This document shows, piece after piece, positions 48,736 through 52,817 of a stretch of 64,000 nucleotides of DNA. The notes below the pieces were generated by a model, which was given only the letters and a program-made list of their open reading frames with translations, was not told the DNA's origin and searched no databases. A program made the position numbers and the translations under genes. Every line of letters begins with the position of its first letter. Within the stretch, counting starts at the first letter, position 1. Where the stretch lies: the NCBI GenBank assembly GCA_021613535.1, contig CP075496.1, forward strand, positions 2,976,001-3,040,000, given 5' to 3'. Origin of the DNA: Adineta vaga (taxonomy: Eukaryota; Animalia; Rotifera).

Positions 48736-49182
48736 ATGCTCGTTAAACATCTTTCTGAACCGTGGTTTTCTCTAACTTATTGTGGAAAAAAAACCATTGA
48801 AATTCGTCTTGATAAAGGACATTTTCACGAATTGAAACCTTCCGATATAAGTAAGTGAAAGACCTTTTTTTTACACATTAATTGACTTCTTTCTTTTTCT
48901 CATATTTACATAGTTGAATTCTATAACGACGATTTGGGTTTCAATATTCGACGAAAATATTGTGTCCGAGTTGTATCAATTGAAACATTCAATACATTCG
49001 AAGAATTATTAGAAAAACATTTATCTCACGCATTACCAACAGTTAAATCCGCTGAATTCGGTTGTCAAATTTTAAAACAAATCTATTCAAAAGATAACGA
49101 ATTTGAAAGATATCAAAAGTTAGCCATACAAATCGAACGTATTAGTGCTGTTCTTAATGAACCAACTCAATCATGTCAATAG
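48736..49182 (+). CDS. ASCH (PUA-like) domain protein of prokaryotic/viral type, one intron
   Basis: Spliced MLVKHLSEPWFSLTYCGKKTIEIRLDKGHFHELKPSDI.EFYN..VRVVSIETFNTFEELLE..LPTVKS..IYSKDNE..LAIQIE contains the ASCH GxKxxExR motif; intron ~48852-48914. Confidence 0.85.
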
Positions 49183-50313
49183 AATCCAATGAAATCTATC
49201 CTTTCATTCAATTTAATGGTCAAACAGCGCGTGAACTAGGTTTTGAACATGGAACTAAGTTATCCGAACGTATAGATAAATCATTAATAATCTATCGAAA
49301 ACAATTTGCAACACAAAAAACTTTCAATGAAAAATCTATTTTAAATTTATGTGAACAATATCGTCGAGGAATATCTTCATATTCAAATGAATATCTCGAA
49401 GAACTTGACGCTATAGCGATAGCATCTAAACAAGATCCTCTATGGATTATTGCTTTAAATTGTCGTCTAGAATTATTAAATCATTTAGCTTTTGGAATAC
49501 AAAATGAATGTACTGTTTTATATGATAAACAAACATGTCAATTAGCAGAAAATTGGGATTGGATTGAAGATTTTGAATATTTAGCATTTGTTAATTATAT
49601 TAAATCAAAAGATATTCTACAAATGATTGAACCAGGTGTTTTAGGAAAAGTTGGATTTAATTCCCATGGAATTGGAGTTACAATAAATTTTGTTGATCCA
49701 TCAATTCAATCAAAACAACCATCAAATATTCCTTTACATATTTCATTACGAGCCGTACTTGATGAAGCAACGAATTTTGAAGAAGCATTGAATATATTCG
49801 AACAAAATGGGCCTGGTTTTGGTGGACATGTTCTTCTTGGTAAATTTGTCAACTAATTTTATGTAGAAAACAAAGAATGTTTTTCTTCTATTAGGTGACG
49901 ATAAGGGTCAATGTTGTTGTGTGGAATTTCCCGGTGATCAAGTTCGCTTTATTCGAAACCATCCATATCATACAAATCATTTTTTATATACGAGTAATAA
50001 TGATCATATTAAAGATAAACCACGATATCAAAATTCATTGGATCGTTATAAACGAATTACGCAATTATGGGATAATAGAGAATCATTACAATCAATTTTA
50101 CTTGACTTTGATGGTGATAAACAAATGTATCCAATTTGTAGATCATATCAACCAACATCATTAGGTTCTGTAGGAACTGTTTGTTCGTTAATTATGAATT
50201 TAAAGGAAAGAACAATGAATATAACAAAAGGAAATCCAAGAAATCATCCGAAATTTTATGAATTTAAACTCAATCAAAAAGATTCCGTAACAACAGATCA
50301 TAGCAATGATTAG
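49173..50313 (+). CDS. Peptidase C45 / acyl-CoA:6-APA acyltransferase-family Ntn hydrolase, one intron
   Basis: G..RELGFEHG, YLEELDAIA, ALNCRLEL, NE-CT autocleavage Cys, AENWDW, PGVLGKVGFNSHGIGVTIN, HTNHFL, SLDRYKRI, TVCSLIMNLKERTMNITKGNP; intron ~49841-49894. Confidence 0.92.
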
Positions 50314-50605
50314 ATATGTCTATGTAATCGAACTACTCCTTTTTTTCTCTTGTTTAATATGAAAAACGACAATATTTTTCTCATACTTTACCGTTGATCT
50401 ATTTTCATTTAGTTGATTCAATAAAACAGAAACAAAAAAATCTTTTATCTATTTATTGATCATATCCGCTGCCTATCAAGGACACTGGGAACTGTAGAAA
50501 TACTCATCGTATAACTGCTTTGCTATTTTCTATTTGTATTTTAAAAAAGTATGGCATTGTATCATACGTCATCTCGAACTTCAATGAGCATAGAACAATC
50601 TCATT

Positions 50606-52817
50606 CTAGTTTTTCTTTGAGAATTGTAATTGTTTGAATCGTTTTGTATTTTCTACCAGTGCGATTTCTGCTGGTAATCGTTCCATACTTGATGCTCCAA
50701 AAAAACCTTTGATGCCATGTGTTCGTGCAAGAATATATTGTACGTCATCAGGTTCAGCTAATGGACCACCATGACAAAGAACAATGACCTGAGGATTAAT
50801 CTTTATTGAAACATCATGAATAGCTTGAATACGTTGAACACATTCATCCAGTGTTATGGAAGATTTAGCACCGATAGCACCTTTTGTTGTAACACCCATA
50901 TGAGCAACAATTATGTCTGCGCCAGCTTCTGTCATTTGACGAGCTTCATCTTCATTGAAGACATATGGTGCTGTAACTAGACCAATAGCATGAGCTTGTC
51001 GAATCATTTCTACTTCTTGTTCATAAGCCATGCCTGTTTCCTCAAGATTTTGTCGAAACATACCATCAATAATACCAACGGTTGGAAAATTTTGTACTCC
51101 AATAAAACCAGCGTCTTTGATTTGTTTTAATAACTGAGGCATTAATCGAAATGGATCTGTACCACATACACCAGCAAGTACTGGCGTGTGTTTTACAACA
51201 GGTAGAACTTCACCAGCCATTTCGAGAACAACAGCATTAGCATCACTATATGAAAGAAGACCAGCTAATGATCCTCGTCCAGCCATACGATATCGTCCTG
51301 AATTGTAAATAATTAGTAGATCAGCACCACCTTCTTCAATACATTTAGCTGATAACCCAATTCCTGCCCCAGAACCAACGATAATTTGACCTTCATCAAT
51401 CACACATCGAAGTTGGTCTAGACATTCACGACGATTTCGTGGTTTTATTTTCTTTTTCTCAATTGTTTTTGTACAATTTTTTGACGTCGATTTATATTGT
51501 ATTTGAGCATGCAATGCTTGAACCATGGCATGTGCAAATGTTAGATCATTGATTGATTCATCTCGTTCAATAATTTCAACTTTTTTTGTATCTCCATGTT
51601 TACGTAATGCTTCAATAAGACATTTATCCGCTTGTTTATCACAAAATGGACCTCCTTCTCCTTAAAAAAACATCCGCACCACACAGATTATATATTGAAT
51701 ATGAATAATAAATACCTGATATCAATGAAAAGCCAGCACGAGGAACAAAGACAGGTATTAGATTAGATCCAGAATGTTGATTGAGTTTTTTAGCAATAAT
51801 CTCACCTAATTGTGTACATTCATCACTTGTTGTTCTCATCAATGTAACTTGACTGTTATGTTCATGTAGCAAACGATTTTTTCTCGTAAATTCTTCTGGT
51901 ACTGTATGACGAGGTCCAAAATTAACCATATCAAGTGCTCCAAGTGAAACGACTTGAGGAAGATTTTTTCGTCCAGCAATTTCTAACCTTTCTGGGCCGG
52001 CTGAAAGTATTCCACCAACAAGTTCATCAGCTAATTCTGTTGTTGTAATATCCAGGACACCATTGATTGAACCAGATTCAATTAAACGTTCCATTGCTCG
52101 ACCACCAATCCCAGTTGCATGAAAAATTACTGTCTTATAACCAAGTTCTTCTAATTGTTTCTTGGCTTCCATTATACAAGGTGTTGTAACACCGAACATT
52201 GTCAGAGCAATCAAAGGTGGCTCATCCATTGCTTCTTTTTCCTTTGTTGTTGATTCATAATATCGAGATGCCATTGCAGCCATAGCAACAGCAGCGTTAG
52301 CTAGAATTGGTTCATTAATACGATTAATCCCACCGCCAATATCAGTTACTGAATGCATTATAGTAACATCACTTAAACCAACTGCTGTATGAGCACTACT
52401 GGACGCAGCAATGGTTGATACAATTAATTTTGGTAAACCAATCGGTAAAATTTTTGATTGTTGTATAGCTTCCGACACAATTGATGTACCACATGAACCA
52501 CCCAATCCAAGAATACCATGTAAACGATTTGATTTATAAAGTTCACTTAATTTTAATGTAAGTCCTTTTGTCATAAAATTAAATCCATCAGTTTTTGTCA
52601 GTTTATGTTCCTCCAACGCTTTATAATTACCTCCACCTGCTTGAAATATCACTTTTGATGAAATATCTGGTTCTGGTGATGTTTTATCATTGGACTGAAG
52701 TCCAATATCAATTAATATTACTGAACACATACCAACATCATCAATCTGTTGACGAATAAAATCATATTCAGCACCTTTTGTATCAAGCGTACCAACAAGG
52801 GCAATTGTTGCCGTCAT
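50606..52817 (-). CDS. Tm-1-like fusion: UPF0261 ATP-binding domain plus TIM-barrel (PEP-hydrolase-like) domain, about 718 aa, one intron
   Basis: GTLDTKGAE, GLGGSCGT, LPIGLPKLIVST, TMFGVTTPC, FHATGIGG, GALDMVNFG. Removing intron 51661-51715 joins in frame to GAGIGLSAK, IYNSGRYRMAGRGSLAGLL, GVQNFPTVG, CHGGP, GFFGASSMERLP. Confidence 0.93.

Follow-up and report, generated by a model that had tools for sequence, protein, structure and literature searches.

A 64,000-nucleotide (nt) stretch of the genome of the bdelloid rotifer Adineta vaga (contig CP075496.1, positions 2,976,001 to 3,040,000 of the forward strand; hereafter the window) carries two open reading frames (ORFs) that overlap by 10 nt: an upstream ORF encoding an ASCH domain protein and a downstream ORF encoding a member of the peptidase C45 family. 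The best-supported reading of this arrangement, to which we assign a probability of roughly 0.58, is that both ORFs lie on one bicistronic mRNA and that C45 is reached by leaky scanning. ASCH and C45 would then be separate functional genes that form a single transcription unit and yield one spliced bicistronic mRNA. A part of the scanning 40S subunits would start at the ASCH AUG, which is in a weak context with a pyrimidine at position –3, while the remaining 40S subunits would pass this AUG, meet almost no further AUG for ~370 nt, and initiate at the AUG of C45, located 10 nt before the ASCH stop and with an A at –3. With an overlap of 10 nt, the two ORFs would be packed as closely as possible, and the overlap would be held by the dual-coding constraint. 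From the comparisons described below, we infer that A. vaga itself makes this bicistronic mRNA and that leaky scanning yields the C45 protein.

The ASCH frame ends with TCA TGT CAA TAG, in which the stop codon TAG occupies positions 49180-49182 of the window, and the C45 ORF opens with ATG TCA ATA GAA, the first base of which is 49173. The C45 frame is therefore –1 relative to ASCH. It is closed upstream by a TGA at 49158-49160 and is open only from 49161. A first-pass annotation of this DNA, made from the sequence alone, had described this –1-frame overlap, its start and stop positions, the upstream limit of the C45 frame and a TATTAG at 49140-49145, and all of these match our reading base for base. 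It offered four alternatives, namely stop-restart coupling, trans-splicing to the TATTAG acceptor, a –1 frameshift and a broken fusion, and expressed no preference among them.

Two ASCH copies have to be distinguished in bdelloids: the copy upstream of C45, which we call type A, and a second copy without C45 behind it, which we call type B. For each exon, we counted the ATGs of every frame that lie between the starts of ASCH and C45, and we derived the expected numbers from synonymous-codon shuffles that keep each protein as well as the codon usage of the locus. Over ~374 nt, the eight type-A sequences contain 1, 0, 2, 1, 1, 0, 0 and 0 ATGs, whereas the shuffles predict 4.2-6.4 ATGs for the seven genomic type-A sequences (P ≤ 0.004 each). 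The type-B copies show no such depletion: the gene of Rotaria sordida (L022) contains 8 ATGs compared with 8.4 expected (P = 0.53), the copy on A. vaga chromosome 1 (L002) also contains 8, and a partial copy (L023) contains at least 8. The first exon of C45 in the same loci carries 5.6-10.5 ATGs per 374 nt. The few ATGs that are left in type A have a T at –3 and open ORFs of just 2-11 codons, features by which we regard them as harmless.

The start contexts differ between the two copies as well. Position –3 is T or C in all eight type-A ASCH starts, whereas it is A in the two type-B starts and in all C45 starts checked. In a transcript-like contig from a related species (L021, see below), the 569 nt ahead of the C45 AUG are free of any ATG except the ASCH start. 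Judged from these patterns, the combination of AUG depletion and a weak start, found only in the ASCH copy that precedes C45, is a signature of leaky scanning on a bicistronic mRNA. A weak context of ORF 1 together with few start codons before ORF 2 has been reported, and tested by mutation, for bicistrons of green algae (PMC11892635; PMC7896298).

The genus Rotaria shows what happens to C45 when the upstream ORF is lost. In both R. sordida and Rotaria socialis, the type-A ASCH ahead of C45 is decayed: its start codon is lost and in-frame stops are present. C45 is intact beside this relic (77-80% identity) and starts at the same place, and its expression is therefore independent of a translatable ASCH. 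In R. sordida, the 440 nt ahead of the C45 AUG hold only 2 ATGs compared with 9.4 expected, even though the ASCH ORF is destroyed, which fits the idea that the ASCH relic still serves as a leader for C45.

Two contigs from relatives carry both ORFs in a form that resembles mature mRNA. Logan contig L021 (SRR22100210, 1121 nt) consists of a 195-nt leader, a complete ASCH ORF without intron and a C45 ORF, all contiguous, with the C45 ORF running to the end of the contig. A second contig of this kind was reported as well. Contig L014 (SRR22100203) contains the 3′ part of ASCH, the 10-nt overlap and a complete C45 ORF of 357 amino acids (aa), again without intron, and ends in Illumina adapter sequence. 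Because the introns are absent from these two contigs yet present in every genomic locus checked, we read both as spliced RNA. The ASCH intron is found at the same position in all seven type-A genomic loci checked, and the genomic loci show a break in the C45 match that fits the C45 intron. The conserved intron positions and the absence of introns from the transcript-like contigs bear out the view of the first-pass annotation that both are resident, eukaryotic, intron-bearing genes.

The overlap is not a peculiarity of the window. The same adjacency occurs at homologous rotifer loci, where the first-pass annotation had suggested looking for it, namely in Adineta ricciae and in other contigs. 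We found the 10-nt overlap in nine further sequences: two A. ricciae assemblies (L006 and L007), four metagenome contigs of the Joint Genome Institute (L017-L020) and the public contigs L014, L024 and L025. The junction ATGTCAATAG is identical in seven sequences, including A. ricciae, L014 and L017-L020, while L024 and L025 carry the synonymous variant ATGTCCATAG. Each of the nine overlapping sequences with a compared junction uses the Ile codon ATA, which preserves the TAG, despite the available synonymous codons. The presence of the overlap in nine further assemblies or contigs means that it is neither an assembly error nor a broken fusion. In total, the ASCH stop is located within a few bases of the C45 AUG in all eleven readable sequences (nine loci, L021 and protein P0028): nine of them show the 10-nt overlap, L021 has a TAA 2 nt before the C45 ATG, and P0028 also ends early. 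Comparison of these sequences indicates that the overlap is conserved in Adineta and that C45 is located behind a type-A ASCH, decayed in the case of Rotaria, in at least two bdelloid genera.

Purifying selection acts on both ORFs. The ASCH protein of the window is 92-95% identical to that of A. ricciae and the metagenome loci. For ASCH, exon 1 has a ratio of nonsynonymous to synonymous divergence (dN/dS) of 0.02-0.11, and the values of exon 2 are mostly 0.07-0.33, with 0.6 in one close, barely diverged pair; the dN/dS of C45 exon 1 is 0.10-0.36. Synonymous divergence reaches ~1 or more, which is near saturation.

Some observations weigh against a bicistronic mRNA read by leaky scanning or limit the evidence for it. 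L021 and L014 originate from related species and not from A. vaga itself, and the contigs from SRR22100203 and SRR22100210 were classified as transcripts by their missing introns and not by library type. A short-read contig may moreover merge two overlapping transcripts, so L021 is no proof of a single molecule. The type-A sequences are kin, and their individual P values are therefore not independent. The strength of start contexts was judged by the general rule of a purine at –3 and by the contrast between the paralogues rather than by the Kozak preference of A. vaga. Finally, the constant nearness of the ASCH stop to the C45 AUG (11/11) is not required by leaky scanning alone.

The main rival is a spliced-leader operon or an internal promoter. 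C45 would then be made mainly from its own monocistronic mRNA, and the bicistronic RNA would be a mere precursor. Such an mRNA could arise if the 23-nt leader were joined to an acceptor within ASCH, such as the AG at 49144-49145, or if transcription started within ASCH. We consider this explanation unlikely, but it has to be taken seriously: rotifers do trans-splice a leader, GGCTTATTACAACTTACCAAGAG (PMC3795323), and all seven intact loci compared have retained an AG ~28 nt ahead of the C45 AUG. In L024 and L025, this AG lies a few bases further upstream, and both add an AG directly before the AUG. The region before C45 in R. socialis, which is not ATG-poor (8 ATGs compared with 7.7 expected), also speaks for this rival, since a nearer 5′ end is needed there. 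However, the conserved AG falls within a Ser codon that is itself conserved, it has no polypyrimidine tract, and L021 reads straight through the equivalent of the TATTAG acceptor site. The exact leader GGCTTATTACAACTTACCAAGAG is absent from all 27 loci, the transcript-like contigs included. A separate C45 mRNA would also leave unexplained why the loss of AUGs and the weak start are seen in type A and not in its paralogue. The two routes to C45, leaky scanning on the one hand and trans-splicing or an internal start on the other, could coexist.

Termination-reinitiation, in which ribosomes would end ASCH at 49180-49182 and re-engage the AUG located 7 nt upstream, is improbable. Stop-restart coupling of this sort occurs on some viral mRNAs, and both the position of the ASCH stop close to the C45 AUG in every readable sequence and the use of ATA in all nine overlapping ones are in its favor. 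On the other hand, reinitiation after an ORF of 127 codons is as a rule inefficient in eukaryotes unless a dedicated RNA element is present, and we detected no unusual structure around the junction (z –0.46). In R. sordida, C45 keeps its start without a translatable ASCH upstream. Reinitiation also does not predict a depletion of AUGs along the whole of ASCH, more than 300 nt away from the stop (an argument made likewise in PMC11892635). The coupled bicistron considered in the first-pass annotation is thus retained in one respect, as the pair behaves like a bicistron, while its stop-restart mechanism gives way to leaky scanning, which is favored by the AUG-purged upstream cistron and the weak ASCH start.

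The other options raised there, an ASCH-C45 fusion protein made by programmed –1 frameshifting or a true fusion broken by a 1-nt indel or an assembly error, are very improbable. In their favor are the –1 frame of C45 relative to ASCH and its opening from 49161. A search for an X XXY YYZ slippery heptamer in 49161-49179, a stretch before the stop that varies between species, found none, and the fold of 49140-49280 is unremarkable (z –0.46) and provides no stimulatory structure; with neither a slippery site nor an unusual RNA structure at the junction, a frameshift is unlikely. The two-frame layout is repeated in the nine further assemblies and contigs, the C45 ATG is invariant, C45 relatives share the N-terminal start, the ASCH paralogue terminates at the same residue, and there is no ASCH-C45 fusion among the 150 best C45 relatives. 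Rotaria retains C45 beside a dead ASCH, and a C45 without a translatable ASCH argues against a fusion as well as against an obligatory frameshift.

The paralogous locus on A. vaga chromosome 1 offers a view of the history of the gene pair. The type-B ASCH located there (L002) shows 71% DNA identity to the copy in the window and is followed ~430 nt downstream by the gene for ribosomal protein S3 (RPS3). In the window, 4.4 kb separate ASCH from RPS3, and this interval is occupied by C45 and a convergent Tm-1-like gene. The ASCH-then-RPS3 layout of type B is also found in metagenome contig L023. Type B ends in ...TSC* and type A mostly in ...SCQ* (variants ICQ, TCQ and ACP). The type-B copy of A. 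vaga (L002 1501-1937, corresponding to chromosome 1 9429742-9430178) carries a 1-nt deletion in exon 2 and is frameshifted in the assembly; it is probably a pseudogene. The type-B ASCH of R. sordida (L022) is intact. By the distribution of the two types, the ASCH duplication is older than the split between Adineta and Rotaria.

Some further features of these loci were recorded. The 4.4-kb segment with C45 and the Tm-1-like gene is missing entirely from the paralogous region of chromosome 1, and the block C45 > < Tm-1-like < RPS3 is kept in A. ricciae. The Tm-1-like gene (UPF0261, UPF0261_C and PEP_hydrolase domains, ~720 aa) is located at 50606-52817 on the minus strand of the window and at 6378-8607 of L006. 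The spacer that separates RPS3 from the type-B ASCH contains a (GAAT)n microsatellite (L002 2040-2076). The situation in R. sordida is the reverse of that in A. vaga: type B is intact and the C45-linked type A is dead.

A linked function of ASCH and C45, about which the first-pass annotation had speculated, is not supported by these observations. We rejected a functional ASCH-C45 enzyme pair, as C45 stands beside a dead ASCH in Rotaria and the intact ASCH of R. sordida is located elsewhere, unlinked to C45. Another candidate that we discarded is the creation of the C45 start by the C-terminus of ASCH: in the lineage represented by contigs L015 and L016, C45 and the Tm-1-like gene occur without an ASCH upstream, and C45 of L015 has the same MSID N-terminus.

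To assign both proteins to families, the ASCH and C45 genes of the window were scanned with profiles one exon at a time and not as joined models. C45 exon 1 matches NCBIfam NF040521 (C45_proenzyme) with 116 bits (cut-off 85) and exon 2 with 46.9 bits; for Pfam PF03417 (AAT, cut-off 23.2), the scores are 30.8 and 35.7 bits, respectively. These matches place the protein firmly in the peptidase C45/Ntn acyltransferase-hydrolase family. The closest solved structure is a member of the same family, the acyl-CoA:isopenicillin N acyltransferase of Penicillium chrysogenum (2x1d; E 1e-25, residues 18-353). Cys113 (NEC|TVLY) is invariant across seven rotifer C45 proteins and aligns with the Cys of the DGC|TTAY processing site of this enzyme, and we predict it to be the nucleophile at an autoprocessing site. 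The two ASCH exons of the window reach 16.8 and 15 bits against Pfam PF04266 (ASCH), each below the cut-off of 21.2 when scanned separately, while two full-length relatives score above it, namely the type-A orthologue P0033 with 29.5 bits and the type-B paralogue P0035 with 34.2 bits. All atlas neighbours of the ASCH protein are ASCH clusters. The nearest ASCH structures by sequence are Pyrococcus PH0355 (2z0t) and PF0455 (1s04), with E values of 8e-10 and 5e-9; we take both to be ASCH-like, the PDB entries themselves reading only “uncharacterized/hypothetical”. The identities of 2x1d, PH0355 and PF0455 to the rotifer proteins are low.

An exhaustive HMMER search returned 1382 C45 relatives, of which the best non-rotifer ones are ~40% identical, stand-alone proteins of 335-360 aa. 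No ASCH domain was detected when seven of the longer C45 matches were scanned against Pfam, and when the rotifer C45 alignment was used for a pattern search across 185,579 prokaryotic genomes, no relative emerged. The named nearest non-rotifer relatives (P0040-P0050), as judged by their matches, belong to Lokiarchaeota/Promethearchaeota, Hodarchaeales and one Nomurabacteria genome. In the single Lokiarchaeota contig inspected, a 131-aa gene is located just upstream of C45 and is not an ASCH; in this small sample, no prokaryotic ASCH-C45 pair was found. Because its nearest non-rotifer relatives are only ~40% identical and derive from Asgard archaea and candidate-phyla bacteria, C45 is probably foreign; the data are compatible with its horizontal acquisition but are no proof of it.

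Bdelloids are known for horizontal gene transfer, and ASCH-C45 suggests a possible way by which a gene without its own promoter could gain expression in these animals. As a tentative scenario, which we would not yet favor over others, a probably foreign C45 may have come to be expressed as a passenger on the mRNA of an ASCH gene already resident in bdelloids. Selection would then have purged the AUGs of ASCH and weakened its start. The arrangement would have persisted in Adineta and Rotaria at least, probably from a time that precedes their divergence, and in R. sordida the host ORF would have died and appears to survive as an AUG-poor leader. If true, the locus would be a worked example of the domestication of a promoter-less transferred gene.

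There are documented cases of leaky-scanned bicistronic nuclear mRNAs in flies, in green algae and for a few genes of mammals, and ASCH-C45 would be a known kind of gene pair in a new phylum. In human MOCS2, as in ASCH-C45, two ORFs of an animal overlap in different frames: the MOCS2A and MOCS2B frames encode two separate proteins. These are, however, two subunits of one enzyme, whereas no functional link is supported for ASCH and C45. The spliced-leader operons of nematodes and tunicates, in which one primary transcript is resolved to monocistronic mRNAs at an acceptor that immediately precedes the downstream AUG, share with ASCH-C45 the head-to-tail order of genes in a trans-splicing organism. 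Unlike these operons, ASCH-C45 leaves no space between its genes, has neither a good acceptor nor a leader on the contigs, and shows the leaky-scanning signature in its upstream cistron.

Among the closest parallels are the dicistronic stoned and Snapin genes of Drosophila (Wall, Phillips & Kelly 2005, J Biol Chem 280:27670, as cited in PMC11892635). As far as they are described in the latter source, these are nuclear mRNAs of an animal with two ORFs, an AUG-poor upstream ORF and an off-consensus start, and their second ORF is translated by leaky scanning (PMC11892635). ASCH-C45 differs from stoned and Snapin by the 10-nt overlap of its ORFs, by an upstream ORF of just 127 codons and by a paralogue that acts as a natural control. 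For the bicistrons of green algae, leaky scanning has been shown by mutation (PMC7896298; PMC11892635); there, the ORFs are usually parted by a short inter-ORF region, whereas the rotifer frames overlap and the host is an animal. According to a survey from 2021, rotifers had until then yielded no report of operons or polycistronic mRNAs (PMC7986045), and we found no rotifer report in the searchable literature. If our reading is true, no translationally bicistronic mRNA would have been described in Rotifera before ASCH-C45. The ASCH family, with and without a downstream cistron, has a built-in control, and the hypothesis is easy to test because the purging of AUGs and the weak start are confined to the ASCH copy ahead of C45.

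The gene models are summarized in Table 1. The predicted proteins have 127 aa (ASCH) and 361 aa (C45), and the latter model matches the A. vaga hypothetical protein I4U23_018062 of NCBI (P0001, 361 aa) with 100% identity.

Table 1. Features of the ASCH-C45 locus, given in positions of the window
Feature	Position	Strand	Remarks
ASCH exon 1	48736-48850	+	Start ATG at 48736, cgatttATGC (T at –3, C at +4), weak context
ASCH intron	48851-48913	+	63 nt, phase 1, GTAAGT...ACATAG, GT-AG
ASCH exon 2	48914-49182	+	Ends at TAG; single ATG (49157) ahead of the C45 start
TATTAG, candidate trans-splice acceptor	49140-49145	+	AG within conserved Ser codon; no preceding polypyrimidine tract
Residual ATG within ASCH	49157-49159	+	Out of frame, T at –3, opens an 11-codon ORF
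Dual-coding 10-nt overlap ATGTCAATAG	49173-49182	+	Contains C45 start and ASCH stop
C45 exon 1	49173-49839	+	Start ATG with A at –3; predicted nucleophile Cys113 is TGT 49509-49511
C45 intron	49840-49894	+	55 nt, phase 1, GTAAAT...ATTAG, GT-AG
C45 exon 2	49895-50313	+	Ends at TAG 50311-50313
AATAAA, candidate poly(A) signal for a shared transcript	50420-50425	+	~107 nt past the C45 stop; read from the DNA only

A protein search with the ASCH of the window (48736-49182) gave no match from A. vaga, and in the two A. ricciae assemblies no gene is annotated at the ASCH position (L006 4565-5010). The ASCH ORF seems to have been missed by annotation, probably owing to its overlap with C45; gene callers seem to leave out the overlapping ORF.

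The Logan contigs L015 (2236-5501) and L016 (74-3339) represent a GC-richer lineage, in which both C45 (351 aa) and the Tm-1-like gene (737 aa) are intron-less. The 3′ ends of the two genes overlap by 4 nt on opposite strands. The two contigs may be either merged transcripts or parts of an intron-poor genome.

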